Source: Octopus bimaculoides
Taxonomy: Eukaryota
DNA: 64,000 bases
Direction of reading: 5' to 3'
NCBI RefSeq assembly: GCF_001194135.2
Contig: NC_069005.1
Span: 35,224,021-35,288,020, forward strand
This document shows positions 176-42,013 of the stretch, in pieces. The notes under the pieces were generated by a model. The model ran no database searches. It saw only the letters and a program-made list of their open reading frames with translations, and was not told the origin of the DNA. Numbering within the stretch: the first letter of the stretch is position 1; each line of letters starts with the position of its first letter. A program made the position numbers and the translations under genes.

Positions 176-1624
176 AGCGGTCCAGCTTCCTAGGGCTAAA
201 CGGCAGTAGTGTGTTCCCTTATTGGGATTGTCACATTAAGTTGACAATATACTACAACTTTATATATATATATATATATATATGAAGAAATTTTGTATAC
301 AACATAAATGTTTAGTGCGAAAAAGAGAAGGAGTAAAATTTATTTTTATGTTTTCCATTTTGTTCCTTTCAGAAAGCAACAATGAAGACAAATCTGAAAA
401 ATCCTTTTTTAAACAAATCTATGACTAATTACTTGGCCGTGTTTGGTGGAACTGGGCGTTTTCATGGAAACTATAAGTCTGGCTTCACTGTATGTCTTTG
501 GAAATGGCATCTTGATATTTGTATATTTAAAATGCTGACCAACATTGGTTGTTCAGAGACATTCCTGGAAGAATGGATGGAACTACATAATTATCATAAA
601 CATTTCAAGAACTGTCTGTCAGTTGTTCTGCCTCAACAGTCAACTGACAACTTCACATGTGTTTTAGGAGAGTTTTATCATATAATAATAATAATAAATA
701 TCAAAATCCTATCTAAATTTGTCATCAAATTCTTGCAAAATATCTTTTTTCTTATTATTCATTTCGATATTATCCAGGAACCTCAATCTAAGAGTCTCTT
801 TGCAAATTGGCAGCAGCTGTGATTAATTAAAATGAATGCAATCTAATTTTCTGGATAGTTATCATCATCATCATTTTATGTCGACTTCCCATGTTAGCAT
901 GGATTAGATCAGTGGGTTTCAACCATTTTTTTTTTTGTTCCTAGAGCCCTTTGCTTACTCTTTTACTCAAGTGGCCCCTCATAGCCATTCCATGTTTAAG
1001 AACTAGTTTGTAGAGATTTCTTTCAAAATTCCTGTTTTGTTTTTTACCGATTTCCTTGTATATGTTTGACGTAGAATTCTCTGAGAGAACAGATTTCAGT
1101 GGCTGGAAACATGGGAAACTATGTAAAACATCAAAAAAACTTGGGAATAGCTAAATACATCCAAAAACATTTAAAATATTACTGTGTATCCCCAATTTAC
1201 TATTTTGCTTGCATGGACCCTCAAAAATGTTATATGAAGTCACAGAGGTCATGTGGAACCCAACTGTGGAACCCATCATGGTCAAAATTCTTATTTGGAG
1301 TTTATTCTCCTCTTAGGCAGGAACCACACTTCTTTGTTACATTCTGTATATTGTTTGGTTTCAATGACCAGTCTGCCCTCAGTCTTGATTACTCTCTCTC
1401 TCTCTCTATCACACACACACATAAGCACACATACACACATGCAACCACACCCACACACACACATCCTCACTAAAACACTGACAACATTTTAATGCCATCT
1501 GTTTTTAAGATGGAGAATCTCTTTAAAAAGAAGAAAGCCAGAATATTGTTCAATAAAAATCTATTTTATTCAAAAATAGTTGAGATGTCAAGTATGATGT
1601 AGAGTTTCATCACATTGCAAGAAC

Positions 1625-2348
1625 TTATAAAGTCCTTAATGTGGTGTCGATCCAGTTTCTGAAGTAGGAAACACTGGTAAAGATGGCAGCATCAATAGCA
1701 CAGTCATAACCAAATGATGTGATGCCAGCCACAACCATGTTGCCATTTCTGCTGGGGCAATAGAAAGGGCCACCAGAATCACCCTGGGGAGGAAACAAAA
1801 AGAATATTTAACAATTAGTTTGAGATAGTACGTTAACCTTGGTCTCGTTCGTTTTGTTGTTCGTGTTGGAGTGGGATGTGATGGGGGTAAATGACATTAA
1901 TTGTTCGATGAGACACATCTAACTTTGTCAACCGTTAAAAAAAAATCTAAGAAATGTAATGTCACAAACTAAGAAAGGTNNNNNNNNNNNNNNNNNNNNN
2001 NNNNNNNNNNNNNNNNNNNNNNNNNNNNNNNNNNNNNNNNNNNNNNNNNNNNNNNNNNNNNNNNNNNNNNNNNNNNNNNNNNNNNNNNNNNNNNNNNNNN
2101 NNNNNNNNNNNNNNNNNNNNNNNNNNNNNNNNNNNNNNNNNNNNNNNNNNNNNNNNNNNNNNNNNNNNNNNNNNNNNNNNNNNNNNNNNNNNNNNNNNNN
2201 NNNNNNNNNNNNNNNNNNNNNNNNNNNNNNNNNNNNNNNNNNNNNNNNNNNNNNNNNNNNNNNNNNNNNNNNNNNNNNNNNNNNNNNNNNNNNNNNNNNN
2301 NNNNNNNNNNNNNNNNNNNNNNNNNNNNNNNNNNNNNNNNNNNNNNNN

Positions 2349-2397
<49 letters not shown>

Positions 2398-5358
2398 CTA
2401 TGTGCTACAAGTTCATACATCGCTACAAATATAAATGAAACCACTTAAAGCTACCTATAGCACACACACACAGACTGGGGTAGATAACCGCCCCGTCAGC
2501 AAAAAAATGCTAGAACACTTGACTGTCAACAAGGTTCTTCGTTTGCTTCTATGGAACAGTTGATTCACTCTGTTAGTATATACATTTGGCATGTATGTTT
2601 ATGGCTGATTTAGCGAAATGCCAAATCGTGGGGCAGCTGGGCGCAATAGAAACCGTATAAACAAAATTTAGTCGTCAGTGATTGTGGCTGTATGTGCTAC
2701 AATCTATCTATCTATCTGGATATTGTATTGATCATCTTTATCCTGTGTGATTAATTCGTTGCGATTTTCTTTGTCTTATTTATTAATAAACTTTTTTTTT
2801 TTACATTTCGTTCTTGTTTACTAATGACAATAAGTACTTTTTCAAAGATTTCCACTTGATTTTGGATACGTTTGATCTAATGGATATGCAATCTGTATAA
2901 CACCTGAGAAACTGTTTGTCCTCTTAAAAATAAATTGGATGTCGCTGGTGAATTTTCATTAATTCAGAATTAAACATCGAAGAAGAGCACATAGACACGC
3001 ACACACAGAGGAGAGAGAGAGCGGGGGGAGATCAAAAGAAAGAGAAAGAGAGAAGGGCGTGATTGACGGGTTGACTGAACGGCGTAATAGTAAATGAAAT
3101 GAATACTTACATCCAGTTTTACCCCATCCAGCCGCGACACATCTTCTTCTGTCAAATTTCTCTCCTGGAGAAGGAAGGGCAGCAGCAGCTACACAGTTTC
3201 CAAACGGCACTGGCTTAGGTAGACGAATCATAGCAATATCGTTGCCTTTTAAAGTAGACATTATTATCATTATTAGATTCTTGGAAAAGAAGAATTCCTG
3301 ACATCGGGCTACTTAAGATGCCAAGAACCCTCCTAGCTGTCCCTAATAACACTGTTTGCTGCAGCTGTACCAAACTGGGTTTTATGCCTATTTCCTCTAC
3401 CCCTCTGTTCAAATCTTTAGGGAAAGTTCCCAATGCACCTATAACTGGTTGGGATCCATTTTACCCGAACTTTCCATAGTCTCTGTAATTCAATGGTTAG
3501 GTCCAGCTATTTTTTTCTATACCTCTCATATTTATTTTTTCATCATTTGCGACTGTAAAGACAATTATATGGCAGTTTCGATTCCCTTTATCTACCACAG
3601 CAAAATCAGGCCTTCTAGATTCTATTACTCTGTCGGTCTGAATGTTAATGTCCCACAACATCTTGTATTTCTTATTTTCTAGTACTTTACTAGTTTCATT
3701 TTTCATTCCATTCATCACTCTGTTCAAATACTAACTTTCTACATAGCTACCAGTGGATTGCACTCCCGAAATTGTCATGTCTTTCTGTGCCAGCATGCTA
3801 CAGTCACTATATGAGTAACGTTTCCCTCTTTTAATTTGCATAATCTACATGTGGAATTTACTTGGTTTTAGTCAGAAAGTTTACGACTAACATATTAATA
3901 ATCCTACGAAAACAGTGGAAACACGAGAGAAAGACAATGGACACCTTATCAACGGTTGACAACTTCTCGAGTAAGTGTTACATATTTTGGGGTTTAACAC
4001 ACATTTAGCTGTGTGTTAACTGAAGCTTATAGCCAGTGTTTAGCTTACATTGAGGTATTTAACATTCACTTATGTCTGTAATCACAAGGAAATCCCCAAA
4101 ATGTTTCGATATAAGATTATTTGTGTAGAGTATGCAGTTAAGTGTCGATTGGAAAATACTTACGCATGGGTCTAGAAGAATATTGAGAATGTACTTTCCA
4201 TTTAGTTGCTGTCATAACATATCGACCTCTCTGTTTGTTATTATTGGTACCAATATTTACAGAAATGGAACGAGTTCCAGGATTGCTTAAATAAATGAAA
4301 ATGAAATCATGTGCATTACTTTCAATCTCCTATATTTAGCTATGTCTCAAATATATGTAACTATAAACGGCGAACTAAAGTTTAATTATTTTACTGTAAG
4401 TATGAATAGAATTTTAGCTTGAGATCATAAACCAGCGAAAATTATATAAACAGAAATCGTACAAGTGACTGCTTCTTTTAGAGTATTTAATGAAAGAAAA
4501 CGGTGTTAGAAATATTGGGAATTGAAGTCTAAAGAAGATCTACATTGCCGAAATTAGATGGTCTTCTTGGGACTTTTTCATTCGAAGATAACGCTGTTAT
4601 GGCCGAAACAGTTTACAGAATTCTCTAGAGATTTTCATGGACATTTTATGTATATTGTCCATGGTTAATACGAACCAAGAAGCCATTGCTTAGTGGTGCT
4701 ATAATGCATTATGTCAGCCAGCCGTGATTCTCTTCCTAAATATAGGATCAGTTTACTAGATTAATGAGGAGACAAAGACATTTTAATAAGGTATTTAAGA
4801 GTCCGTTGAGAATAAATGGGGATGAAATCAAAATAATTCACTCGGCGTATAATTAAATTCATCAGCTGTCATAGCTTTTATGTTTCGTCTGTTTCGAAGT
4901 CCCTTGATGCATTAGTGACTCAATGAGAGACGTTTACGAAGTAGTAAAGAAGCATGGTTAGTTTGTAACCAGTGAAAGAACTTTTACTTACAAGCAATGG
5001 GCAGCGGTCAAAACATGTTGGTTGTCCAATAGTGTACCACCACAAGCGAAACCACCGTCAGTAGTTTCAAAGATCAAGTGGACGATGGATGGATACTGAC
5101 AATTTGCTGCAGGAGAGCCACCAACGATTTGTTCCCCTGGGGCTGGAAATACATTAACAAACAATATTAGGAAATATGTTAACAAAAAGCTGTGTATTGT
5201 GTTGTCTTGTTGTGTAGAAATATAAATTGTCTTGAAAAAATAGACATAAAATCGTGTTACGGTCTCGAAAATGATTACTAGAGCAATAGAATAGAGAGAG
5301 GTTATTTACCAGCGAAACTGAGAGGAAGAACGATTGCTAAACAAAATATAGCCAACAT
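1625..5358 (-). CDS. Secreted S1A serine protease A (chymotrypsin-like); exon 5 not visible, presumably in gap 1980-2348
   Basis: Exons (minus): 5310-5358 MLAIFCLAIVLPLSFA (signal peptide); 4992-5142 APGEQ-IVGG...TAAHC; 4164-4285; 3111-3245 NDIAMIRL...GWG; 1625-1783 GDSGGP...TLRTL*. GT-AG boundaries and phases match paralog B. Catalytic His, Asp and Ser motifs are present. Confidence 0.88.
3270..3730 (-). mobile_element. 3' fragment of a restriction-like-endonuclease (R4/NeSL-type) non-LTR retrotransposon in intron 3 of protease A
   Basis: Translations ENKKYKMLWDINIQTDRVIESRRPDFAVVDK and GTFPKDL...LQQTVLLGTARRVL match the RLE C-terminal signature; the fragment ends in an AAT-type tail. Confidence 0.75.
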
Positions 5359-5423
5359 GTTTGAGATTGGTGATGTTTCCGAGTCTGAAACACTTTATGC
5401 TACCTCAGCAATATTGGTCCTTC

Positions 5424-5430
5424 TTTTATA
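5424..5430 (-). promoter_or_regulatory. TATA box of protease A
   Basis: TATAAAA on the minus strand ~65 bp upstream of the ATG, at the same position in all three exon-1 copies. Confidence 0.65.
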
Positions 5431-6309
5431 GCTGTAGCTCTGCAAGGTTTTCTTTTCAATGTGCAATTCTCAATTAGTGAAAGTTCTTTAAAAACGTATA
5501 TTTCTTTTGTAACTTTTGTTAATGCACGGTAACATTTACAATGACAATGCGAGACTCAGGATCAATTGCGGTCTACGGCTTTTCTTTAGAAACTGTTCAT
5601 GGAGACGTCATTTGTGCGAACGACAAAGGTTCGTAATCTATAATGTACTTTAAAAAGCTGAACTAAAGGCTACTTGGTAGATTTGAGTCCATTTCTCTTT
5701 AATTGTGCTGTCACGCTGATGCCATTACGTTGCTAAAATGTTTGTGTCCATGTATATAAGATATGTTATACATACATACATACATACATACATACATACA
5801 TACGTACGTACGTACGTACGACCATGCATACATACATACATGTATGTATGTATGTATGTGCATTTGACACATGCCAAAGCTCTCAGGTGCTGATAATCAA
5901 GGGGTATCATTATTGATTTTATAGGATCTTATTTGTTCAATTAGGAACCCCCACAACAAAAACGGAACTCTCACAGAAGTTATTAACGAACATCTGGATT
6001 TCAATTTCTTTCACACGACTCAACCAATTACAATCATTATGACAATATTACCGTCGCTTACAGGATGTTATGTCGGTATTTCTGTGACTAACAGCAAAGT
6101 CTTTTCATTCCCACTGTTTTCTTTCCTGAACCATCTCACATAACAAGGAACTCGTAGTAGCAACCCTATGAATTATCAGCTTTTTTCGAATAAACTATTT
6201 TAAGTTTAGTACTTTTCTCCCATTTATATAGACAAACGCATCACACACACGCACACACACAATCACACATACACACAGAAAAATGTATGCACATATTTGT
6301 GTGCGTGGC

Positions 6310-8520
6310 AAAACAAGAAGCTTCTAGTCCGGACCTGCACGTTGGCGGCAGATGCAAAGGTGGTCGCCTTCCTGGGACCTGGTGACAACCCAGAGACTCG
6401 GTCCTACATCTCCGACTGGGCAGACCTATTTGGGAACACCGCTGCTTACCTTGAATGGGGACGGACCTAGAAAAGGTGAGCTAAATATCGGATGTCAGCA
6501 CAGAATCCTGGCTGGTAAGCCGCCTCCAGCATGACACCCATTCAAGCAGTCGAACAACAACAGAAATTAAATTAAATTAATTAATTAAACTAACCATTGG
6601 AACATGGAACGTGCGAACGCGCCTCGATCCTCAAGACACAGAGAGATCAGAACGTTGAATAGCTCTTGTCTCCATAGAACTAGCGAGATTTAACATCGAC
6701 ATCACTGCCCTCAGTGGAAACTGAAGAGATAGGTTCGGGTTAGAGCTTCTTCTGAAAAGGGAAAGAAGAAAGAGAGAGAAAAATTCATGGAGTCGCTTTT
6801 GCTGTAAAATCCAAGCTTGTGAAGGAACACTATCAATGAACGGCTTATGACTTTCCGAATACCGATCTCTGCCACCACCTTTGTGACACTAATCTCTGCT
6901 TACGCACCTACACTTGATACTACTGACAATGTGAAAAACAGTTGAGTGACCTGGTCCTCAATGTACCACCAAATGACAGGCTCCTCCTCCTCCTCCTCAG
7001 GGATTTCAATGCAAGAGTGGGGAGCGACAACAGACTATAGAAGAATGTTATTAACAAAGAAGGAGTCGGAAACTGCAATGAAAATGGACTCTTGCTCCTT
7101 GGGCTGTTCGCTGAACACTCTCTCGCTTCATCACCAACACCCAATTTCGACTCCCAAGTCGCTTCAAGACCACCTGGAAGCACCCCAGGTCGAAACACTG
7201 GCACCTTCTGGACTACTCCATCATCCGACAAAGGGGCAAAAGAAACGTCCTCATCACGTGAACGGCTAGCAGTGCTGACGATTGTTGGACAGACCATCGA
7301 CTAGTCATCACCCGCCTTCGAGTAATGGTTAACAACAAACCAAAGACTAGAAAGACAAAACCAGTCTGAAGAAAACGTGACACATCGAAGCTTAACAACC
7401 TGGAGATCAGCTCCTTTTATACATTCTCAAACACCTTCAATCCATCCCATCTGACAACCAGGATATGGATAAGGAATGGAGCACACTTCGGAAAACTATC
7501 ACTGCAGTGGCTGAAAATACACTCGGGTACAGCAAAAGGAGACATCAGAAGAAGTCTGATGACAATGATCAAGAAATCAACCAATTGATCGATGCAAAAC
7601 GGCAGGCCCGCCTCTCTCATGAGCAAGATCCAAGATCGCGACACAAGAAAGGTGAGATGTCAAGACCTTGAAAGACAATGCCAAACAAAATTGAGGGATT
7701 TGCAGAACAACTGGTGGCGACAAAAGGCCGTTGAACTCCAGGGGTATGCTGACGCTTGTGACCTCAGACGCTTCTACGCAGCAACGAAAGAATTTTTGGG
7801 GCCCGTGAGATCGTCACCAGGGTCTCTTCAATCAGTAGACTCCAACATCATCCTGACTAACCCACCAGATATCCTTCAACGCTCAAGAAAGCACTTCTCG
7901 AGTCTTCTGAACCAAGACTCCAACGTGACGGAAGATTTCTTGCATCCAACTCGACACTAGATGAACACGCTACCATCCTACGAAAAGCACAAGATTGCGC
8001 TCAACTGCATGAAGTAGCGTAAGTCTCTTGGCCCAGATAATATTCCAGTGGAATTTCTAAATCATGGTGGACTACTATTAAACACCAGTCTGTTCACATT
8101 GATTCTCCGAATCTGGAAGAACTGTAATGATGAGTTTTGGCCCCGAGGCTCTTTTCCCTGTACCTTGCAGCAATGTTTCATCAACTGCCTTCAGACAATC
8201 CAGGAGTCAACATTTCCTGGAAAAATTTAATCACTTTTCATACTTATAAAGTTTGCTTTCGAATAAGTGCACATCGGAAGAGGACGTAGAGAACCGATTA
8301 AGAGCGGCTCACACCGTGTTTGGTGGCCTCCCGGGGAAAAGGGTCATCTAGAACAGAGAACCACAAAACAAAATTGAGTATCTACAAAGCAGTCGTGATC
8401 TCCACTCTCCTCGACGGTTGTGAAACCCGGACTCTTTACCGAAGTGACGTCAAAAGACTGGAGCGACTTCACCAACTGAAGCTCCGCTCTGCTATGAATA
8501 TCAAATGCAACGACTCTTCA
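6310..8520 (+). mobile_element. Degenerate RTE-clade LINE (APE endonuclease plus partial RT, internally deleted)
   Basis: Frameshifted motifs LTIGTWNVRT...ELARFNIDITALS (endonuclease), KSLGPDNIPVEF, and LSIYKAVVISTLLDGCET...RLERLHQLKLR (RTE 3' region); many stops. Confidence 0.85.
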
Positions 8521-8640
8521 TTGCAATTTACTATTCAATTTCTATTTATTTACCAATTATTACCTTAATTATATTCACATATTATCTATTACCCACTAAA
8601 ACAACCTATACCCCCCCCAACCCAGACATATACCAACATT

Positions 8641-8790
8641 CTTTTCTACTCTAAGCACAAGGCCCAAAATTTTGAGGTAGAGGGCCAGTCGATTAGATCG
8701 ACCCCAGTACGCAACTGGTACTTAATTTATCGACCCCGAAAGGATGAAAGGCAAAGTCGACCTTGGTGGAATTTGAACTCATAACATAAT
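8641..8790 (-). mobile_element. SINE-like dispersed repeat, family 1 (other copies ~18410-18620, 42180-42410, 43350-43520, 48780-48980, 50290-50490, 56780-56920)
   Basis: Shared core ...gaccccgaaaggatgaaaggcaaagtcgacct(c/t)ggtggaatttgaactca... recurs at least seven times in the window. Confidence 0.8.
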
Positions 8791-10009
8791 GTTCTATAAC
8801 ATGACGTGCATGGACACGTCAAACACTCGCTCTTTCTTCTCCTGTACACTACCTGCGACTAGCTATGGTGTTCTCCATCTCCGTAGCTGCTATGAGACAA
8901 AATTTCAGTTCCCTTCACCAGTCACGGAATACGGCAAGGTGAAAACATTCCCTTTTCAAATTCCATTCTGTTCTATTGAATGATGATGCACAAGCTGCGT
9001 AAATACTCTCATTCCGTATCGGAATAAATTCCTTATGTACATGATGTCTTCACAATCTCACACGAGTTGTTGTTTCTCACTTGATTTCTAACAGGTATCG
9101 AAGAATGACCGAACATTATATTAAATTAGTGGGTTAGAAACCCACTAAACCTTTATGGACGGGGTGAAAAAGACTGCTATAGAGAATCGAACCCTGCACC
9201 TCTCAGATTCCAGCTGAGAGCTCTGTACCATCAAACTAAACAACCCCGAACAGCAGATACCGTCTTTTATAACGCTAAATAATAGCTTTTGAACTGTAAG
9301 AGGTATAGCGTTCGATTCTCTGTTGCGGCTTGGTGTCCACTTTTTTCCGTCTACAAGGGTATTTTATCTGATCCTCTCAGCTGTTCTCACAGCTATTCTC
9401 TTGCGAGATTTCCTTCTCTTCTAAAATACCAACTCACTTGGTGCTTCAATGTTTATATTTTATCTTTGTTTATAAAAATCTCCTCACATGTTTTCATTAC
9501 TTTTTGTGTCTATCTTTTTTCCATTCTATTTTCCTTTTTCTATACATTTGTAAAAGGTTGATAGTTGCAATAGAGGCATTAGTCTCTCTCTATCACCTTT
9601 CAAGAAAATTATATATTAAGAAAACAGTAGAACAATTAACAACACAATGAAAATGAGTTTTATTTTTTGATGATGCTTTTTTCAAAAAGTTACATTTCGC
9701 AGACCTGTGTTATCCTTGTATCCAGATTTATAATCTGGATAATTTTTTTTTTTATATAAACTGGCGGTTTCGAAGCAGTTGTTCATAGTCATCTTCTTTC
9801 TCTTTGGTTACCAGGGAGATATTCAAATCAGCAGGGCAGCTGACCTCTTTTGACGGTTCAATACTTTTTCTTGTCTGTCCCAAACAACGATATCCGGCCT
9901 TTTATGTTTTACACTTGACAGATGTTTTGGTGAGAATGTTTCACCAAGATTCCTTGTACTGATGTTTATGTACGTATTCAATAACAGAGGAACCCTTTAT
10001 GTTTATTCC

Positions 10010-10577
10010 AAGACAATATGGATGTGTGTATGTGTGTGTATGTGTATGTATGTGTGTATGTATGTATGTATGTATGTATGTATGTATGTATGTATGTGTG
10101 TATGTATGTATGTATGTGTATGTGTATGTATGTATGTATGTATGTATGTATGTGTGTATGTATGTGTGTATGTATGTATGTATGTATGTATGTGTATGTG
10201 TATGTATGTATGTATGTATGTATGTGTGTATGTATGTGTGTATGTATGTATGTATGTATGTGTATGTGTATGTATGTATGTATGTATGTATGTATGTGTG
10301 TATGTATGTGTGTATGTATGTATGTATGTATGTATGTGTATGTGTATGTATGTATGTATGTATGTATGTGTGTATGTATGTGTGTATGTATGTGTATGTG
10401 TATGTATGTGTGTATGTATGTATGTATGTATGTGTGTATGTATGTGTGTATGTGTGTATGTATGTATGTATGTATGTGTGTATGTATGTGTTTATGTGTG
10501 TATGTATGTGTATGTGTATGTATGTGTGTATGTATGTATGTATGTATGTGTGTATGTATGTGTGTATGTGTGTATGA
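10010..10577. repeat. Long compound (TATG)n/(TG)n microsatellite with higher-order periodicity
   Basis: About 570 bp made only of tatg/tgtg units. It explains four spurious ORFs in the ORF track. Confidence 0.95.
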
Positions 10578-11677
10578 GGAAAATGTATACACTTCTTAAG
10601 TATGGTGGATCGGTGCTGTCGTACGCGGTTGACACTGGATTCCTCGTCTACAAACTAACTCAGTCACCAGTTTTAGAATTGTATTATAAAGAAGAGTAAG
10701 TGTGAGATTGAGGTTGCCTTCTTTCACTGTGTCTTCACCATGTCTACTTTTATGCTCGTTAGTAAAATATGGATGTAAATTTATTTTTGTCTAATTTCGC
10801 TAATCATTCGCCATTGCTCTGAGTTGGCNNNNNNNNNNNNNNNNNNNNNNNNNNNNNNNNNNNNNNNNNNNNNNNNNNNNNNNNNNNNNNNNNNNNNNNN
10901 NNNNNNNNNNNNNNNNNNNNNNNNNNNNNNNNNNNNNNNNNNNNNNNNNNNNNNNNNNNNNNNNNNNNNNNNNNNNNNNNNNNNNNNNNNNNNNNNNNNN
11001 NNNNNNNNNNNNNNNNNNNNNNNNNNNNNNNNNNNNNNNNNNNNNNNNNNNNNNNNNNNNNNNNNNNNNNNNNNNNNNNNNNNNNNNNNNNNNNNNNNNN
11101 NNNNNNNNNNNNNNNNNNNNNNNNNNNNNNNNNNNNNNNNNNNNNNNNNNNNNNNNNNNNNNNNNNNNNNNNNNNNNNNNNNNNNNNNNNNNNNNNNNNN
11201 NNNNNNNNNNNNNNNNNNNNNNNNNNNNNNNNNNNNNNNNNNNNNNNNNNNNNNNNNNNNNNNNNNNNNNNNNNNNNNNNNNNNNNNNNNNNNNNNNNNN
11301 NNNNNNNNNNNNNNNNNNNNNNNNNNNNNNNNNNNNNNNNNNNNNNNNNNNNNNNNNNNNNNNNNNNNNNNNNNNNNNNNNNNNNNNNNNNNNNNNNNNN
11401 NNNNNNNNNNNNNNNNNNNNNNNNNNNNNNNNNNNNNNNNNNNNNNNNNNNNNNNNNNNNNNNNNNNNNNNNNNNNNNNNNNNNNNNNNNNNNNNNNNNN
11501 NNNNNNNNNNNNNNNNNNNNNNNNNNNNNNNNNNNNNNNNNNNNNNNNNNNNNNNNNNNNNNNNNNNNNNNNNNNNNNNNNNNNNNNNNNNNNNNNNNNN
11601 NNNNNNNNNNNNNNNNNNNNNNNNNNNNNNGAGGGGGGGGGAGAAATCTTTGAGTCGGTTGTCTAATAAGTTACCTT

Positions 11678-12195
11678 GTTGGTAGAAATATAAATTGTCT
11701 TGAAAATGTAGATATAAAATCGTGTTAGATCAATATAACAGTGAGAGGTTATTTACCAGCGAAACTAAGAGGAAGAACGATTGCTAAACAAAATATAGCC
11801 AACATGTTTGAGATTGGTGATGTTTTCGAGTCTGAAACACTTTATGCTACCTCAGCAATATTGCTCCTTCTTTTATAGCTTTAACCCGACAATGTTTTCT
11901 TTTCAAAATCTGCAAATTCTATTTGCTCTTCTGTCGCTTTTGTGACCATTGTTGAAACACGGCGCCTCTTACAATAGCAATGAAAGACACAAGATCAACT
12001 GCGGTTTGCATCTTGCAGGAACTCATTGTTGATGGACAAAATCGTTTATATTGATGACAAAGACTTTTAAAATGTAAACTGAAGTAAAAAGATCCATAAA
12101 AAACTGAATAAAATATTAAATACTGAAACTGGAAGTTGTTTTTTTCTTTTTTGAAAACTGCTGCTGCTGCTGTTGTTGTTGTTGTTGTTGTTCAT
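11678..12195 (-). pseudogene. Orphan copy of protease promoter, 5'UTR and signal-peptide exon (exon 11757-11805)
   Basis: Reverse complement gives ATG...MLAIFCLAIVLPLSFA-G|gtaaat with TATAAAA at 11871-11877. About 450 bp upstream is nearly identical to the gene B promoter (15380-15845). No downstream exons are visible before gap 10829-11630. Confidence 0.7.
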
Positions 12196-13214
12196 GATGA
12201 TGATAATTTTCTTAATGTACTTAAACTGGAAGTTTTTCTATTTTATTTTGTTGTCGCCGCTTTTTGTATCGCATCGATTGAACGGTAATACACCTGTGTG
12301 CGGGTATATGTGTATGTGTATGTGTGTATATGTATGTATATATATATATGTGTGTGTGTATGCATGCATGTATGTATGTGTGTGTGTGTGTATGTAACAT
12401 CCTAGACATGACTTTAAGCTGCATCTGACAGTGAGACCCTGGTTCAAGAGTTCCAGGGTTTTCAGGAATGCGGAACCACTGTTCAACCACGATTATTCGC
12501 AGGTCTGTTTTCACCTGGAATAATAGCACCTGTCGGGGTCCCAGCTGTGGCTTTATGGATTTATGCGAAACTTCTATTATTCACATTTCAATGTTTCCTT
12601 ACTTTCAAAGCATTTTCCCCATTAGACGCCGGTTTGGCCATTTATAAAGGTATCCGAAAAAACCGCGTATCTCAGTAACCCGTGGTCCGATTTACGCAGA
12701 ACTTGTATTATTCCGCTTGTATTCACATGAGCATCCGATTCATGACGTCTCCTGCTTTTGCCTCATTCTCTGTTTTGCCAGACGCTCAGCTCTTCAAGTG
12801 TTCGATTCCTGATCTCTCCTGCTTCTGTCTCTTTCCCTCTGTTCCGCCAGACACTCGGCCCTTGCTTTATCAATCGACCCTTCAATTCGCATACCTGTCC
12901 CGATCTTGAGTAAATATTTCGTAAAGGACCCGTTCGTACTTCGGCGTGAAATAATTTTTTCCACAGGTTTTTTTCGAGTGCATTCAACGTGTCTCACCTT
13001 CAAACCCACCGCAAGCCACTTTCTTCCGGAAACGAAAGGGGGGAAGGGTTGTGGGGACCTCGAAGTTTCCCGGGAAACTCTGAGTTTCCTACCAACAGAA
13101 TTTTGTTTCGTGAGCTCTTTTTTTTCTTTTCCAGTTTATTTCGCATATTTTCAACGAATGTGACATTGAAATCACGCATAAACGGTTCCTTTCACCATAT
13201 ATATATGGTATATA

Positions 13215-13250
<36 letters not shown>

Positions 13251-13849
13251 CTCAGCCTCGTCGTAGTTCCCCTGGAGACATTGAACTAGTTCCCCACCTC
13301 GTTTTTTTCCCTTTGCTCAGAATAAAGTGTCGTGCTATAATAGTGTGTTGCCGTGGGACGTCGTTGTCACTCGTGCTTGTGCTGATTTGCTAACTACAAG
13401 GAGCTGTATATGGTTGCTGGTGTTGGAAGCTGACCGTTGGCTGTTGGTTGTTGGCAGCCATTTCTGGCGTTGGAGGCGAACAATTGTGCAAAGAACAAAA
13501 CGACGAAATCTGTTGGGATTTTTACGAACCAACTGTTTTTGTTGAGAGAGTTTCAATGTTATTGTACTTGGAGTAATTGAAACAGTATTGCAGTTGAGAG
13601 AGTTTAGATGTTATTGAAATTGCATTCGAAAAGTTACCGTTGGTCGTTGTGTTTCAGTGGATAGTCCATTATGTTGGTATTAGCTAGGTTCATCCGCTGC
13701 CCGTGTCTGTTTGCCTTGTCCTCTCAGCTACATCCCAAAGCTCTCTGGGTCTTGGTCCTATGTGCGTGTTATTTTATACCGATTAAGAAACTCAGAACGG
13801 AGAGCGCCAAAAGCTGACATGGTCGGCCTATTCCACATGAAATCGTGAC

Positions 13850-14650
13850 TAGCCAGATTTGTTGATGACGTGGATACAGGTGATTTATTGGAATTCAGCT
13901 GGGGATTCACTCCATTGGTTACACGGCGTTTCCCACAAATAAAATATGCGTATAACCTATTCCAGGTGAAGTCGCGATTGGTCAGAATCGTTGATCATGT
14001 GGGCAACATTCCCGTGAATCGCGACATCAATTGATTGCTGAATATTCTCACTCGTAGTCAATTCTTATCGTTCATTATTATCCTGGTGTCTCTAGCGTTA
14101 ATTGGGATAAATTCTATCATGAAATTCAGTTTTTAGCGGAAGTGATTTAGAGCTGGAAGAATTTTAGTGAAGTTGTTTAACTGGAGTTTGTGTTTAATTC
14201 CGACATATTCTTTGCTTTATATGCAATTATGTGGACGTTAGTGATGGAGATGGGAGGTTGTTTGAAGGAGTTTGCATCTCCTTATTAAATGTGTTTTGGA
14301 AGGAAGGAATGGATATTCTATTGAAATCTTTTCTTTTATCAAATTGATGAGATCGAATGCGATGCTGTTGAGGTTTTCCCTCTCTTTATTTTTTTAATGG
14401 ATGTAAGAGGTTCGCGTTTTGAATGCTTTTCGACGGAGACCCCTTCAATAAGCGCCTACACAGTCACATCACATTTTTGTCCTAGGAAGAATCTTTCGAA
14501 GGTGTCGATGTACTTGTGTGCAGAGGTAATCCCTACCTCGTCTTTTTCTGTTGGAAAAGGCTTGTCATTGCATGTACTTGACTGTGTTTCTGATGAGGCG
14601 AATGCATAGAACTTTCTAGATGGTATTCATATATTATTCAGTGAAAGAAG
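13850..14650 (-). mobile_element. Highly degenerate LINE reverse-transcriptase relic (L1/Tx1-like)
   Basis: Broken minus-strand peptides such as EPLTS..KKIKRGKTS and RIFSNQLMSRFTGMLPT resemble early RT motifs; many stops. Confidence 0.35.
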
Positions 14651-15141
14651 AATTGTGCTTTAACATCATCTGTTCGTGGGTCGTTGATAAGATTCAACAT
14701 TCGATTATATTTCTAAATTAAAGAAAAAAAGAAAACAGCGTTAACTTTACTTATTGCTACCTGAATACTACGATATCTTGTATGAGCTAACAATTTATAC
14801 TTGTGTTTATCACAATTTTTCACTATGTATGTATGTATGTATGTATGTATGTATGTACGTATGTATGTATGTATGGTGTGTATGTGTATATGTACGTTTT
14901 AGTGTTTGTTCCAATGCTGTTGGTTGGCTTACGTCTTTGTAACCGAGCGGTTTGGCAAAAGATATCGATAGAACAAAGTACCAGACTTCAAAATAAGTAC
15001 TGTAATTGATTTGTCCGACTAAACCCTTCAGTTCAGTGCCCCAGCATGGGCACAATCCAATGACTGAAACAAGCAGAAGATAAAAGAGGAGAAAAGAAAA
15101 CTTTGCGCACAACGATTTTTCCTTCCGTAATTGTAAAACAC

Positions 15142-15186
<45 letters not shown>

Positions 15187-15711
15187 CGTGTGTGTGTGTG
15201 TGTGTGTGTGTTTGCGGGCGTGTGTGTATTTGACTAGGTACATACATACATACATACATACATACATACATACATACATACATACACACATGCCTACGTA
15301 CATTCATAAAATATCACGTATATCATTCTTCAGTCTTTGCAATAAAAACAAGCTAGTAACAACAACATTATCATCATCATCATCATGAACAACAACAACA
15401 ACAACAAACAGCATCCGCAGTTTTCAAAAAAGAAAAAAACTTCCAGTTTCAGTATTTAATTTTTTATTCGTTTTTTTATGGATCTTTTTACTTCAGTTTA
15501 CATTTTAAAAGTCTTTGTCATCAATATAAACGATTTTGTCCATCAACAATGAGTTCCTGCAAGATGCAAACCGCAGTTGATCTTGTGTCTTTCATTGCTA
15601 TTGTAAGAGGCGCCGTGTTTCAACAATGGTCACAAAAGCGACAGAAGAGCAAATAGAATTTGCAGATATTGTGCATAGCGCTTTGAAAAGAAAACATTGT
15701 AGTGTTAAAGC

Positions 15712-15718
15712 TATAAAA
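15712..15718 (+). promoter_or_regulatory. TATA box of protease B
   Basis: TATAAAA ~65 bp upstream of ATG 15784, conserved in the paralogous promoters. Confidence 0.65.
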
Positions 15719-15783
15719 GAAGGAGCAATATTGCTGAAGTAGCATAAAGTGTTTCAGACTCGAAAACATCACCAATCTCAAAC

Positions 15784-16903
15784 ATGTTGGCTATATTTTG
15801 TTTAGCAATCGTTCTTCCTCTCAGTTTCGCTGGTAAATAACCTCTCTCTATTCTATTGCCTTATTACATTATTTTTCTTAGTGTTAATACAATTTTGCGG
15901 TTACATTTTCAAGACAGTTTATATTTCTACCAACGCATCACACGACTACACCATCAACACACCAATACACTCAGTTTTTCTGTTAATATATTTCCAGAGC
16001 CAGATGAACATATCGTAGGTGGTTCTCCAGCAGCAAGTTGTCAGTTTCCATCAATAGTTCATTTACTCTTTGATACTACTAAAGGTACTTTCGAATGTGG
16101 TGGTACACTATTGGACAACCAACATGTTTTGACCGCTGCCCATTGTTTGTAAGTAAAATCTCTTTCACTGGTTTTTGTCTTCTATACTATAATGGAGAAA
16201 GATGCTTATTAATTAGGTATGTAACAATTACTAAAAGTACTAAAAGAAAGCAATTATTAAAAGGTTGACCGTCTGGAAATATTTTTATAAATTCATATTC
16301 TAAGAAATTTCCCATAATTTCGATTTCTCAAATTTCTTGAATTTTTTAAACTCCAATTTCTCGCAAATTTAAATATTCTCTACATTCATTGCATCCAATT
16401 CACAAATTTAAATATTCATTGCATTCACTACAGAATATTCCATTATCATTTGCAAAGTCTCTCACTTTCTCTTTTAAGTTTTCATTCACTATTTGGAAAA
16501 CCGACAGTTTATTCTATTAATGTAAACGTAATTTATTATTTATTGAATGAAAATTTTTAAAACACCCATATAATTTTTGAACGCAGAATCGCTGTGAGAA
16601 GAGTCTAGAAAGGTGGGTAATAACTATTAGAAGACGAGAAGAAAAAAAGTTACCGATAAGTACTCGAAACTTGCAACTTATTCACAGTTTCCAAACACTG
16701 TACCACTAAGTCAATACATACACAAACAAGTTGCATGCGCGACTTCAACGGTGACACACTTTTGTTAAAAAGTATCCCTTTTCTGGATAGCATGAGGCAA
16801 CAAAGTCAGGGGTGTATACATCTGGAGTAATACCCTTTTATTTATACGATTTTTTCATTTCATGTTTATTTCATTCATTGTTTACAATGTTCTCTCTCCC
16901 CCT

Positions 16904-16935
<32 letters not shown>

Positions 16936-19900
16936 TACAAAGCTTACAGAGGGGCTGCTGTATTGAAATTTCTTTGTTGCTTTGAGGGAAAGGTAAAACT
17001 TGGCAAACTGATTCTCCGTCCGTTGTTGGACTACCGTGATATCTGTTTAGAACAAAGAGATTATGACTGTGATAAAATAATGAAAGCAACACTTACTAAG
17101 CAAGTGAGCACTATTATATAAAAAAAATAATTAGACATAATAAAATTTAAACATTATTAGAATTGAGAATCAAATGTGAAAATATTGCCAAAGGGCTAGC
17201 AGAAAACCGCCTGGAGGGCGGTCTTTCTGCTAGTGCAAACTAACCTCGCTTCCTTACTATTTCACAAACATCTCTCATTGAGTCACTAATGCATCGGTGG
17301 ACTACACAACAGATGAGATGATAAATTTAAATATATTGCTGAGTGAAATATTCTAATTTAAATTCCCATTTATTTTCGACGGACTCTTAAACAAATATCT
17401 TACTCAAATGTCTTTGTCTTCTCATTAACTCAGTAAACCGATCCTATATTTAGGAAAAGAATGATTGCTGGCTGACAGAATGCACTATCGGACTATTAAG
17501 CAATGGCTTGATGGTTCGTGTCAACCATGGACAATATATTCAATACATAAAATGCCAACGAAATTCTGTAAATGTTTTGGCCATAGCTTTAGCAAGTAGA
17601 GTTATCTTCGAATGAAAAGGTCCCAATATAAACTTCAAATTCCAATATTACTAACTACATTTTCATTTGTTAAATACTCTAAAGCAAGCAATCACTTCTT
17701 GTACGATTTCTTTGGTTTATGAACCCGAACTAAAGTTCTATTCCTGCCGATCTAAAATATAGATTATATTTCATATATAACTAAATATAAAAGGGATTGA
17801 AAGTAATGCACAGGTGACTTCATTTTCATTAATTTCAGCGCTACCGGAACTCGTTCAGTTTCTATAAATATTGGTACCAATAATAACCAAGTGAACGGTC
17901 GATATGTTATGACATCTAGAACATGGAAAGTCCATTCTGGTTATTCTGATAATCCCATGCGTAAGTACTTTGCAACTGATATTTCACTACATACTCTTCA
18001 CAAATAATCTTATATCTTAATATTCTTTGGGATTTATTTATGATTACTTTAACAAGGCAAAAACAAAACTTTCATTTGTAGTTGATTTGAACGCAAGTTT
18101 CTTGCATAATCCGTTACTTTCCACGATTTGACTGAGATTTTCCGTTCGATGTGGATGAATCAGTCAAATTTCACAAGAGTTTACACTCATACACTTCTGA
18201 CATTCGAAACTGAGGAAAATCACAAAGAAAATCATCTGAGACAGTTAGACATAGAATATATATATATATATTACCTGTGAATTTGCGTGTGCAAACTGGG
18301 AATGCATACAAAGAGCTTCTCTGCCCTAGGTGTACGGAAAAAACTTGGCGAGAAATGGAAGAAAATTTAAAGAAAGAAGAAAAAAAATCAACAATAATAG
18401 TAATCCTTTTCACTATAGGCACAAAGCCTGAATTTTTTAGGGGAGGGGGACTAGTCGATTGTATTAACCCCAGTGTTTCACTGGTACTTCTTTTATGGAC
18501 CCTGAAAGGATGAAAGGTAAAGTCGACCTCAGTGGAATTTAAACTCAGAGCGTAGTGACAGGCAAAACACTGCTAAGTATTTCATCCGGTGCGCTAACAA
18601 TTCTGCCAGCTCACCGCCTTAATACTAATAACAACAACAACAACAACAATAATAATAATAACAGCATCAATGGCAACAATAACTATAACAATAATTTCTA
18701 TTTTAAAAGGCAACGATATTGCTATGATTCGTCTACCTAAGCCAGTGTCATTTGGAAATTGTGTAGCAGCTGCTGCCCTTCCTTCTCAAGGAGAGATATT
18801 TGATGGGAGAAGATGTATCGCAGCTGGATGGGGTAGAACTGGAGGTAAGTATTCATTTCATTTATTAATATCTTTCTTGTCTCTCTCTCTCTCTCTCTTT
18901 CTTTCTCTCCCACCTTATCTATCTTATTATGTACTGAATTTCAGAGAGTTTGCCAGCGATATCCTACGTATCTTTAAGGCTACAAACAGTGTCTCAAATA
19001 GCATAGAGTGAACATCAAATTCGTAGGGAAATAAATAAATGGCAGTTGTGGGTTGTGTAAGGAGATCAAAAGATATTCAGCAATGATAAAAATTCAGGAA
19101 ATCACTTAGAATTTATCACACAAAACCATCTTGTACGTATGTATGTATGTATGTATGCATGCATATATGTATCACTTTCCCAGTAATAGTTCAGATTTGT
19201 AGTCTTCAAATCAGCTTTCTCCTTTCTGGTTTTGAGAAGCCTAATTTCTCAAGACTGATATTTAGGCAGTGTGTTACGTATCCCAATGCCCCAATAATTA
19301 CAGGTATAAACCTGAAGTTGTAATCTGAATAGAATAATTGTAGATTCCTCAATGATGGCTGAGAATTTTAAGATTTCCAGCGCAATAGCAGCTTCTTTTA
19401 ATATCCAGTAGAACTAAAAATGACTTCAATAAAGGCAATTCAAGTTTTTTTTTTTTTTCTGTTTCTAATTTCAGTGGATAAGTCTTCGACTGTCGAACTT
19501 CGACATGTAACTATGCCAATTGTTGAACACAGACTCTGCAAACAGAAAATGGACTATGCGTCTCTCATGGATGAACATATTTGTGGAGGTGATTTCAAGT
19601 TCGGTGGTGCCAGCACTTGTATGGTGAGATTTTTTTTTTAGACCTTGAGAAGTGGAGAAAGTTCAGGGAACTTTCAATCCCTAAATACACATGCAGTGAT
19701 AAGATATTTACACAAACATGAAATCAACTCGAACCGAAAGTAAAATGTAAAGTGAGACAGAATAACTAAAGTTATACGATTCCACCAATCTTCTTCAAAT
19801 ATATAGAAAGAGACACTGGAAAGTTAGATGCATATCCAGCTATTTATCTAACTGGGTATTGAACCTCTTAAAAATGCAGAGAATACCTCAACCAGGTAAA

Positions 19901-20368
19901 AAGCAACATTTCAGAACATCAATATCTTTATATTTTATTGAAGAAATTGGTTATGTTTATCCTATAAAACGAAAACTAATTCTTCAACAGAATATCACTT
20001 CCTCCTCACACTGCACCTTCTGTTGCATTGCCCAATGCCAGGGATCCTGGCTGGAAACATTTCCCAGCAGAAGAATCTTTGGTACATAATTCTGTCACTT
20101 CTTTCCCTTCTATTCCATTCAGCATTGCAGAAAGATTAAGATCTGGAGATAAACATATTGATCGGATGGAAAACTCCAAGCTTTACAGCTTAAAGGTGGT
20201 GACTAGACCTGCTTCCTTCTCAAATTACATCATATTGTCTTCAAATAACGAAGATACCTTGAATAATATTGTCCTACGTACAATATTGTTGTGGAAAAGA
20301 CGAAATAAAAAGGAGTAGAATGTCTGTGATTAAAGGTTTGATGGATCAGGACTGGCCTTGGGCTAAGA

Positions 20369-20399
<31 letters not shown>

Positions 20400-20786
20400 G
20401 CAGTAATGTAAGAAAGAAAAGCCCATAGAAACAGGCAGAAATAAACAGACATACACTTATACATACATATACAAGCTTATGTAGTTATATAGTGACACAC
20501 ACGCACACATGAACAACATATATCTCATCGTATTTATATATTTCTATACACATTCTCATATATACAAGTATACACACCCGTACCATCTCAAACTAATTGT
20601 TAAATATTCTTTTTGTTTCCTCCCCAGGGTGATTCTGGTGGCCCTTTCTATTGCCCCAGCAGAAATGGCAACATGGTTGTGGCTGGCATCACATCATTTG
20701 GTTATGACTGTGCTATTGATGCTGCCATCTTTACCAGTGTTTCCTACTTCAGAAACTGGATCGACACCACATTAAGGACTTTATAA
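15784..20786 (+). CDS. Secreted S1A chymotrypsin-like serine protease B, 254 aa, complete (candidate posterior salivary gland/venom or digestive protease)
   Basis: Exons 15784-15832, 15998-16148, 17839-17960, 18710-18844, 19475-19623, 20628-20786 total 765 nt with consistent phases. Protein: MLAIFCLAIVLPLSFA EPDEH IVGG...TAAHC...NDIA...STCMGDSGGP...TLRTL*. Ser189/Met192 as in chymotrypsin. AATAAA at ~20882. Confidence 0.95.
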
Positions 20787-21224
20787 GATCCAGAAACAGG
20801 ATCGATGACGCCCTGAAAATTTAATAGATTGTTGCAGTCCAACGACACTCTAAAATATATTTGATATTTCAACTATATTTAAATAAAATAGATTTTTACT
20901 GAACAATTTTCTGTCTTTCTTCTTTTTAAAGAGATTCTCCATCTTAAAAATAAACTCACAAATATAAAGAATGTTTCTGTTTACTTTTCTAATGTTAAAA
21001 TACCAAATTCCTGCAGCTTGCTATGATATTGATGGTGCATTCTGTATTTCTTAGACCTGATAATTACAGTCTTGTACTAAAGAAGAGTTTAAAGAATCTC
21101 TTATTGTCCATTGAGGCATTTGGCACACACACACACACACACACACACAATCCACCCATACACACAAATGTATATGTGTTTGTGTGGGGGGTGTACACAT
21201 ACATTACACATACACTCACATACA

Positions 21225-21520
21225 AATAAGTCCCCAGGTTTCCTCCACAGTTAGAGATCAGCACTTCTTTACACAGCCATCTTCGTCCATATGCATCACA
21301 TGACCATATCAGTGCAGTTGTTTCTCTTGCACACCACATCTGATGCCTCTTATGCCCAGCTTTTCTCTTAAGACGCTTACACTCTGTCATACATGCGCAC
21401 TGACGTTGCACATCCAGCAAAGCATACTGGCTTCATTTCTTTCAAGCCTACACAGGTCCTCGGTGGTCACAGCCCATGTTTCACTGCCATGTAGCATGGT
21501 TCTTTGCACACAGGTATCAT
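21225..21520 (-). mobile_element. RTE LINE 3' fragment
   Basis: CVQRTMLHGSETWAVTTEDLCRLERNEASMLCWMCNVS; same family as 56960-57709. Confidence 0.8.
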
Positions 21521-21600
21521 GCATGCATGCATGCATACATACATACATACATACATACATACATACATGCATACATACATACATACATACATACATGCAC

Positions 21601-21631
<31 letters not shown>

Positions 21632-22409
21632 CATACATACATACATACATACATATAAATTCTTATTAATGTAAACAAGTGAAAGAATAAAAGAACCGAA
21701 GTTGAAAATGCAGAGGAAATACATTAAAATTAGAATTTAATTTTATTTTGAAATATCGGAATGCACCCAGGGTATATTGGTATTTATTGTATGGTTTCCG
21801 ACTCACGAGAGAGTGATGCAGGATGTGTCAAAACAACCATTGTGATAAATAAAGTTTCTAGTATATTCTATTTTCCGTATCACCTGTTTCTGGTTGTGTG
21901 GTAAGAAGCTTGCTTCCCAACCACATAGTTCCTGGCTCAGTTCTCCTGCATGGCATCTTGGGCAAGTATCTTCTACAATGTATGAATTTTCAACATATAC
22001 ACACACACACACACACACAGAAAATCTGCCTTTTATAGATAAGATACATACATATACACACACACACATGTATATACACATATATGTATAAATATATTAA
22101 TGTGTATACACACATATATACACACATATACGTGCATGTTATATATATACATTTATCTTCATATATTATGTCCAGACATATGTGTGTGTGTGTGTGTAAG
22201 CATGTGCATTTCTAAGTATGGGTGTGTGTTTTGTACACACACGTGTTCCACATTTGTTGGTTAAAGGTGTCTGCATGCACCAAAGCAATACTTTGTCAAT
22301 CATTTTGAATCTTTTAGAAACTATTTCTTGCTATCGCCATTCACATTGTGTGCTTGGGAAAACTCCAGCTGGACGTCTGTTTGTAGTGACTGTTTTCTCA
22401 AACCACCTT

Positions 22410-26486: not shown

Positions 26487-26524
<38 letters not shown>

Positions 26525-26533
26525 GCCTATCAC

Positions 26534-26564
<31 letters not shown>

Positions 26565-41638: not shown

Positions 41639-42013
41639 ATCCTGGGACCACTTTTCATTCTATTATACGACACTCATCATCATTCTTTAACAATCCTTGT
41701 CAATTTTTCCATTTCCTGTAATTCTCCAGAAATAATGGAAATTTGTAATGATGTGATAAAATCTGGTGTTCTGCAGATAAAAGCATTTGTAGAAAGTTAA
41801 TGCATCCCTATTTTTTTGGATATATTTACTAAATCTTTGATAATGATGGTTTTATGTTGAATTTTAATCTCATCAGGGTTTTTTTTTTTTTTTTTTTTTC
41901 ACAAAGGAATACACTTAGAGAAGAATATTTCTTAATCCAGTTGGATTTTGTTAAGCAAACAAACTGCAATTCCAATTAAGCCAAAAGCGAAAACGATTTT
42001 GATTTTTTTAAAT

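Follow-up and report, generated by a model that had tools for sequence, protein, structure and literature searches.

Concerted evolution of the end blocks of two inverted S1 protease genes in Octopus bimaculoides

The 64-kb window of Octopus bimaculoides DNA analyzed here (contig NC_069005.1, positions 35,224,021 to 35,288,020 of assembly GCF_001194135.2) contains two neighboring S1 protease genes, gene A on the minus strand and gene B on the plus strand, and between them a third element, termed A', which is an inverted copy of the B promoter and first exon. Gene A and gene B are very probably old inverted paralogs whose end blocks are kept alike by interlocus gene conversion, with A' taking part, while the middles of the genes have diverged and B has been accelerated. 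Concerted evolution of both end blocks is real and recurrent, and is carried chiefly by a four-way comparison with Octopus sinensis, in which the two end tracts together hold 16 concerted and no orthology sites and the remaining gene holds about 450 orthology and 4 concerted sites. The gene models were built by hand from alignments of both arms using canonical GT-AG splice sites (Table 1), and the 5' ends of A and B face each other, so that the genes are arranged head-to-head as the first-pass annotation of this DNA had stated.

Exon 1 and exon 6 are each identical between A and B (0/49 and 0/159 nt differences, with a synonymous divergence, dS, of zero in both), and exon 6 is embedded in a near-identical 3' tract in which 211 of the 212 nt agree and the single mismatch lies in the intronic part. 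The first-pass annotation had described the same identical exons and about 50 nt of adjacent intron with one mismatch, and these counts are reproduced. The identity takes in the 35 synonymous sites of exon 6 without exception, together with 49 nt of intron, the 5' untranslated region (UTR), the TATA region, and the start of intron 1. Given 62 differences over 616 coding positions, a run of the length seen in exon 6 is not expected by chance (P 3e-9 for exon 6 itself, 2e-7 for a fragment anywhere). Taken by itself, the identity of exon 1 does not reach significance (P 0.004 for the specified end and 0.28 for any fragment), and the support for the 5' end comes from its flanks and from the cross-species pattern. 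The borders of the 3' tract are sharp, with a 3'UTR that is about 85% identical on one side and unalignable intron on the other. The 3' edge of the perfect O. bimaculoides tract falls ~1-4 nt past the stop codon at a 41-nt insertion in B, and the 5' edge is the point where the A intron ceases to align to the B intron. The insertion is similar to the last 41 nt of the coding sequence, as if it were a diverged tandem duplicate of them (shuffle P ~0.0025), and is missing from A and from both O. sinensis genes. The conversion units are not simply the signal-peptide exon and the catalytic-Ser exon, as had been proposed in the first-pass annotation; both exons are included, but the tracts also cover promoter, UTR, and intron and involve A' as a further partner, forming a 160-nt block of promoter, 5'UTR, exon 1, and splice donor and a block of about 330 nt of intron end, exon 6, and 3'UTR.

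The O. sinensis reference is a gap-free sequence of 67,439 bp (CM016883.1:930594-998032) merged from four loci with consistent overlaps. In the whole-gene alignment of A and B from both species, informative columns were classed as orthology sites, where A matches A and B matches B, or as concerted sites, where a base is common to both copies of a species. The stretch preceding the TATA box (A 5738-5442) has 91 orthology and 0 concerted sites, from 5441 to 5282 there are 0 orthology and 5 concerted sites, and orthology is seen again from 5277. At the other end, A 1832-1500 contains 0 orthology and 11 concerted sites, with orthology again at 1499. Introns and exons 2-5 keep orthology, and in the unconverted exons of O. 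sinensis the dS between paralogs is 0.6-1.2 compared with about 0.2 between orthologs. The 160-nt 5' tract shows 5-11 differences between copies of the same species and 11-18 between copies of different species. Four of the concerted sites in exon 6 are synonymous, and four further 3' concerted sites fall in the 3'UTR, a part with just ~85% identity between the O. bimaculoides copies. The latter are independent of the perfect tract and are not a collapse artefact. Gene conversion between the inverted copies, the central proposal of the first-pass annotation, is borne out by these site patterns. Each concerted site records conversion in one of the two lineages or in both, and need not reflect an event in O. 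bimaculoides.

The same phenomenon is seen outside this species pair. The cDNA-derived paralogs of Octopus kaurna differ at 0/16 and 3/52 residues at their ends and at 14/40, 14/45, and 13/50 residues in exons 3-5, and at both termini they have species-specific residues common to both copies. Both O. kaurna paralogs have EVEEH before IVGG, which suggests that in this species the 5' conversion tract extends into exon 2. A-like and B-like types of exon 5 both occur in Abdopus and in O. kaurna, placing the A/B duplication before the split of these octopodids. In O. sinensis the A and B copies are nearly identical in about 100 nt of intron (1/102 differences) and about 150 nt of 3'UTR (1/59), a distribution different from that of O. 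bimaculoides which indicates that conversion is patchy and lineage-specific.

Repeat collapse or consensus smoothing during assembly could in principle have made exon 6, and with it exon 1, perfectly identical where the true copies differ. The sequence of the window is interrupted by eight N gaps, including one at a distance of 148 nt from the tract, a contig end lies 47 nt from the A' repeat, and an identity of 211/212 beside a 3'UTR at ~85% is unusually sharp. However, each arm sits in a contig with unique and different flanks on both sides, and the O. bimaculoides copies of the 5' tract differ at 7-11 of 160 nt, so they were assembled separately. Concerted sites are also found in the non-identical 3'UTR, and the phenomenon recurs in the gap-free O. 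sinensis and O. vulgaris assemblies and in the O. kaurna cDNAs. An artefact of this kind is unlikely and would at most turn 100% into very high identity; only the exactness of the 211/212 figure depends solely on the gap-rich O. bimaculoides assembly.

Purifying selection acting alone, with no exchange between the copies, is scarcely credible as the source of the identical ends. In all octopods compared, Argonauta included, the protein sequence encoded by exon 6 shows strong conservation, as does the signal peptide, which is what such selection would give. Against this, the identity extends over synonymous sites, intron, and 5'UTR as listed above, the 16 concerted sites with no orthology site are positions that change between species jointly in both paralogs, and the synonymous concerted sites of exon 6 cannot be accounted for by purifying selection and already contradict it.

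The start of exon 1 is present in three exact copies in the window, not two, the third being an orphan exon within A' that has its ATG and GT donor intact. The comparison of the A'/B repeat with O. sinensis gives 17 concerted and 0 orthology sites with orthology beyond both breakpoints, and A' has been homogenized with B across ~500 bp. The breakpoints are the same in O. bimaculoides and O. sinensis, from which it follows that A' predates their split. The orphan exon is 6.7 kb upstream of the B gene in O. sinensis (41848-41896 of the merged region) and 6.6 kb upstream of B in the gap-free O. vulgaris assembly (locus L005, 3320-3367), the position of A' being conserved in three Octopus species, and the A'/B arrangement is the same in the two N-free sequences, that of O. 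sinensis (67 kb) and that of O. vulgaris. Codon 10 of A' encodes Val, as in B, in the O. bimaculoides and O. vulgaris copies (GTT) and Ala, as in A, in the O. sinensis copy (GCT). One A gene of O. sinensis has two isoforms encoding the same protein, and one of the recorded coding starts is the orphan exon; this annotation hints that A' may be used as an alternative first exon of gene A. The presence of a further gene belonging to the orphan exon and hidden in the gap at 10829-11630 was considered and rejected, as the syntenic O. sinensis interval is gap-free, of similar length, and without a protease exon.

The process would be non-allelic gene conversion (interlocus and probably intrachromatid) between inverted repeats, an orientation in which exchange is possible without deletion. 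Tract ends would be fixed by heterology, for example by the 41-nt insertion at the B stop codon, and the most recent event in O. bimaculoides would have left exon 6 identical. The gene middle may escape conversion through poor intron homology, through selection retaining paralog-specific loops, or through both, with accelerated amino acid change in B, chiefly in exons 3 and 5, that would be compatible with positive selection on specificity loops but is not proof of it.

Gene B (plus strand, 15784-20786) forms a complete open reading frame (ORF) of 254 amino acids, and its product is 100% identical to the NCBI protein "chymotrypsin-1 [Octopus bimaculoides]" (XP_014768493.1). Residues 22-247 match the Pfam Trypsin profile (PF00089) over positions 1-220 of 220 with an E value of 9.5e-49 and 166.6 bits (cutoff 20.6). 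Alignment to bovine chymotrypsinogen A shows a complete triad of His57, Asp102, and Ser195 in the AAHC, NDI, and GDSGG motifs and a serine at chymotrypsin position 189, and the AlphaFold model of B is confident (pLDDT 91.8). In A the triad residues His (exon 2), Asp (exon 4), and Ser (exon 6) are all present, and the two genes have a common six-exon structure as far as A is sequenced. The zymogen layout predicted by eye comprises the putative signal peptide MLAIFCLAIVLPLSFA, a 5-residue propeptide, and then IVGG. The residue preceding IVGG is Gln in A (APGEQ, 5127-5142) and His in B (EPDEH, 15998-16013) rather than Arg or Lys, making activation by trypsin unlikely.

The top 22 database matches are all from cephalopods at 38-84% identity, with the following matches at 34% or less, and the relatives of B include proteins of O. 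sinensis, the Abdopus SP1-Abd series, the O. kaurna "S1 type peptidase", and Argonauta. The best matches are the S1 proteases of the cephalopod posterior salivary gland (PSG; SP1-Abd, SP1-Oct, SP1-Sep, and the O. kaurna protein), with a full-length identity of 74-84%; length, signal peptide, IVGG, catalytic triad, and Ser189 are the same as in A and B, and there is no structural difference. The closest solved structures are those of vertebrate chymotrypsin C and chymotrypsinogen, the best PDB sequence match being chymotrypsinogen C (1pyt_D, E 1.5e-33). These have the same S1 fold, but their identity is merely ~30-35% and their activation site has Arg or Lys compared with His in B and Gln in A. 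By sequence similarity, A and B are old paralogs within the cephalopod-specific family of secreted S1 proteases that is known from the posterior salivary (venom) glands of octopuses. This salivary family dominates PSG-specific expression in O. bimaculoides (PMC7656900); the supplements of that study, looked through for expression data, do not contain XP_014768492 or XP_014768493.

Exon 5 of gene A was not found in the sequenced parts of the gene, either in all frames of 1780-3120 or by tblastn with B, and exons 4 and 6 of A are out of frame unless an exon of 3n+2 nt intervenes. The NCBI annotation of A is a truncated protein of 153 amino acids named "mast cell protease 2" (XP_014768492.1), and a query of the protein collection with exons 1-4 of A returned only this model and no full-length O. 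bimaculoides A. The O. sinensis exon 5 projects to ~2177-2325, within the N gap at 1980-2348, which accounts for the truncated annotation. The window is collinear with O. sinensis across this gap, with flanking matches spaced by 917 nt in the window compared with 904 nt in O. sinensis, and exon 5 of A most likely lies unsequenced in it. The alternative that A is a decaying pseudogene of O. bimaculoides, with exon 5 truly lost and the ends overwritten by conversion from B, would fit the missing exon, the truncated public annotation, and the lack of a full-length protein entry. It is considered quite improbable, given that exons 1-4 and 6 have open reading frames and canonical splice sites, that the gap coincides with the O. 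sinensis exon 5 position at matching spacing, and that A orthologs are under strong purifying selection, with a ratio of nonsynonymous to synonymous divergence (dN/dS) of 0.25. In O. sinensis a 14.7-kb tandem duplication has produced two A genes with identical coding sequence, the window having a single A, and in O. vulgaris a fused A model of 412 amino acids is present (P0121).

In the middle of the genes, the amino acid differences between A and B counted in the first-pass annotation (10, 13, and 6) are reproduced as 10/51 in exon 2, 13/40 in exon 3, and 6/45 in exon 4, as are the only 2 purely synonymous codon differences of exon 3. The Nei-Gojobori dN/dS values for A and B are 0.34 for exon 2, 1.25 for exon 3, 0.30 for exon 4, and 0.53 for exons 2-4 together, and the value for exon 3 (20 nonsynonymous and 5 synonymous differences) is not significantly greater than 1. 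When the changes are assigned to branches by parsimony on the four sequences from O. bimaculoides and O. sinensis, the exon 3 branch leading to O. bimaculoides B has 10 nonsynonymous and 2 synonymous changes and the other terminal branches have 1:2, 1:0, and 2:1. Over exons 2-4 the nonsynonymous changes are 14 in B compared with 4 in A (P 0.03), with the synonymous changes equal at 5 and 5. The replacement excess is specific to the O. bimaculoides B lineage and is not a symmetrical divergence of the pair.

Between B orthologs, dN/dS is 1.15 in exon 3 and 0.82 in exon 5, and the proportion of nonsynonymous differences (pN) in these two exons is 16.9% compared with 8.1% differences in introns (P 6e-5, alignable intron stretches only), with exons 2, 4, and 6 below intron divergence. 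The synonymous proportion (pS) is ~18% and is likewise about twice the intron divergence (8%), so that relaxed constraint on B is still a live explanation. B exon 3 differs from O. sinensis at 21/122 positions (17%), compared with 2/100 in each of its 100-nt flanks (17739-18060 compared), and these flanks (2%) have diverged far less than introns do on average (8%). Replacement of the O. bimaculoides B exon 3 from another donor was set aside; the exon 3 dS of 0.18 matches the rest of the gene and there is no donor in the window, gene C, the third S1 paralog, being far more distant.

The position of the differences was examined by alignment to bovine chymotrypsinogen A. Of the 26 differences in the mature domain, 13 are located in one or another of the eight canonical S1 loops (the 37-, 60-, 70-80-, 99-, autolysis, 174-, 186-, and 220-loops), which make up 26% of positions (odds ratio 3.6, P 0.006). 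When coil is compared with strand and helix in the AlphaFold model, no enrichment of differences is seen (P 0.40). The first-pass statement that the changes fall largely in loops around the active-site cleft is half true on these figures.

The divergent middle could reflect age together with relaxed constraint on B, by subfunctionalization or drift, instead of diversifying selection on substrate-recognition loops. Coleoid venom serine proteases are reported to be mainly under negative selection (PMC4619613), and relaxed constraint is in keeping with the low dN/dS of exons 2 and 4 beside the 1.25 of exon 3, with a 10:2 ratio on the B branch that is no different from the neutral site ratio of ~3.3:1, with the synonymous divergence of B orthologs being as raised over introns as the nonsynonymous divergence of exons 3 and 5, and with the absence of coil enrichment. 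The enrichment of differences in the canonical loops stands against it, as do the intact ORF, triad, cysteines, and splice sites of B in three species, the limitation of the acceleration to exons 3 and 5 where exons 2, 4, and 6 remain under the intron divergence, and the repeated variation of the same positions (37-loop, 76-78, and 96-97) across species. The loops are in general the least constrained parts of S1 proteases, which again would suit relaxed constraint. Taken on both sides, this explanation is given a weight somewhat below even. Positive selection on B exons 3 and 5 is suggested but not shown. The first-pass claim of diversifying substrate-recognition loops holds to the extent that B exons 3 and 5 are accelerated; the per-exon dN/dS it called for exceeds 1 in exon 3 alone, and not significantly, with low values in exons 2 and 4. 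The claim should be restated as a lineage-specific acceleration of B exons 3 and 5.

Several points weigh against the reading of A and B as old paralogs with converted ends and diverged middles. The concerted sites are unpolarized, as the comparison holds no outgroup, and the O. bimaculoides assembly is gap-rich, so the 100% identity in the 212-nt repeat may be exaggerated by consensus. Exon 6 of O. sinensis differs at 12/159 positions between A and B, 8 of them nonsynonymous, showing that homogenization is patchy. Exon 5 of A is unseen and the integrity of gene A is unproven. For the middle, no dN/dS value is significantly greater than 1, and synonymous sites, too, have diverged more than introns. 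A more far-reaching proposal, and a doubtful one, is that the locus is modular, with the promoter/signal-exon and last-exon/3'UTR cassettes actively kept uniform for co-regulation and secretion, A' serving as an alternative B-type promoter and first exon for A and/or as a standing donor, selection blocking conversion of the loop exons, and B exons 3 and 5 being positively selected.

Conserved ends with a variable middle are also found in toxin genes. In snake-venom serine protease and phospholipase A2 genes the exons diverge faster than introns and UTRs, and conotoxin precursors combine a conserved signal with a hypervariable mature region. A and B have the same overall pattern, with exons 3 and 5 of the B orthologs at about twice the intron divergence. 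The differences are that the conserved ends of A and B are demonstrably maintained by two-locus conversion and that the overall dN/dS here is at most 0.5, with the acceleration confined to one paralog and two exons. Arm-to-arm conversion is known in inverted repeats and palindromes such as those of the human Y chromosome, and segment-limited conversion between duplicated genes is known for the gamma-globin genes and the L/M opsins. The A'/B repeat resembles these systems in that inverted copies a few kb apart are near-identical within species and diverge between species (17 concerted and 0 orthology sites), and A and B resemble them in having short, heterology-bounded tracts with functionally distinct segments left unconverted. 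The arms of the Y palindromes are tens of kb long compared with 0.16-0.5 kb at the octopus locus, which differs from the palindrome, globin, and opsin systems in having three partners (A, A', and B) that share the 5' tract and in having as its units the regulatory and terminal-exon cassettes of protease genes. In the literature searched, no paper was found that combines gene conversion, cephalopods, venom, and serine proteases, which is no proof of novelty; the locus is a clean, ordinary example of segmental conversion in a family where this is seemingly undescribed.

Table 1. Features of the protease locus, with coordinates given as positions in the window
Feature	Position	Strand	Basis or remark
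Gene A exon 1, 49 nt, putative signal peptide MLAIFCLAIVLPLSFA	5358-5310	-	alignment and GT-AG
Gene A exon 2, propeptide, IVGG, catalytic His in AAHC	5142-4992	-	alignment and GT-AG
Gene A exon 3, encodes 60-, 70-80-, and 99-loops	4285-4164	-	alignment and GT-AG
Gene A exon 4, NDIAMI ... AAGWGKTG, catalytic Asp	3245-3111	-	alignment and GT-AG
Gene A exon 6, GDSGGP ... stop, identical to B exon 6	1783-1625	-	alignment and GT-AG
Gene B exon 1	15784-15832	+	alignment and GT-AG
Gene B exon 2	15998-16148	+	alignment and GT-AG
Gene B exon 3, fast-evolving	17839-17960	+	alignment and GT-AG
Gene B exon 4	18710-18844	+	alignment and GT-AG
Gene B exon 5, without sequenced A counterpart	19475-19623	+	alignment and GT-AG
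Gene B exon 6, stop codon included	20628-20786	+	alignment and GT-AG
A arm, 5' concerted tract: TATA box, 5'UTR, exon 1, 27 nt of intron 1	5282-5441	-	5 concerted, 0 orthology sites
B arm, 5' concerted tract common to A and A'	15701-15860	+	four-way site patterns
A arm, recent 3' conversion tract: intron 5 end (49 nt), exon 6, 4 nt after stop	1621-1832	-	211/212 to B
B arm, recent 3' conversion tract	20579-20790	+	211/212 to A
A arm, wider 3' concerted block, adds 3'UTR and AATAAA	1500-1832	-	11 concerted, 0 orthology sites; orthology from 1499
41-nt insertion, O. bimaculoides B only	20787-20827	+	at 3' edge of identical tract
A', inverted copy of B promoter, 5'UTR, exon 1, and intron 1 start	11678-12207	-	repeat alignment with B
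Orphan exon in A', ATG and GT donor intact	11757-11805	-	exact match to exon 1 start
B arm of A'/B inverted repeat	15373-15934	+	88% identical overall, 96-97% in blocks
Gene C, third S1 paralog, tail-to-tail with B	24201-28398	-	outside conversion tracts
Assembly gap within gene A	1980-2348		missing 149-nt exon 5 expected at ~2177-2325 via O. sinensis synteny
Assembly gap, A-B intergenic region	10829-11630		flanks collinear with O. sinensis; matching interval without protease exon

The window has a G+C content of 37%, and two of its N gaps, at 1980-2348 and 10829-11630, touch the A/B finding. Over both gaps it is collinear with O. sinensis, with the same flank order and orientation and approximately the same spacing (flanking matches of the second gap are 1744 nt apart in the window and 1944 nt apart in O. 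sinensis), which supports the order and orientation of the three contigs. A (TA)n run adjoins the first gap at 2349-2397. Copies of a tetranucleotide-type microsatellite (CMYV/HTYI in translation) are scattered about the A-B intergenic region and next to the second gap, at 10016-10576, 12295-12396, 14824-14909, 15239-15308, and 21518-21657. A G+C-richer stretch at 6300-8600 contains degraded fragments of a retrotransposon lacking long terminal repeats (non-LTR), with reverse-transcriptase-like ORF pieces at 7592-7960 and 8320-8568; the syntenic O. sinensis copy is 88% identical, which makes the insertion an old one. Gene C is more distant from A and B than A is from B, its exon 6 being ~58% identical to that of B; the AAHC, NDIAI, and GDSGG motifs are present and exons 1 and 3 were not located. 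Further along the window, an inverted repeat of 169 nt and 99.4% identity (52259-52426 and 54066-54234) flanks N gaps at 52427-52726 and 53282-53933, with a perfect 69-nt palindrome nearby at 53088-53156, and this arrangement may be a scaffolding or gap-filling artefact.

For the annotation of the family, the gap over exon 5 truncates the A model and would make the O. bimaculoides paralogs undercounted. A published survey retained only trypsin domains longer than 200 amino acids (PMC7656900), a filter by which the truncated A model would be dropped. A' provides a concrete, testable candidate for an alternative promoter. The mosaic histories of these genes can mislead whole-gene trees and dN/dS estimates for this protease family, and analyses should be partitioned by exon. 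Within the main protein family of octopus saliva and venom, the locus provides a case of segmental concerted evolution that is well delimited and supported across species.

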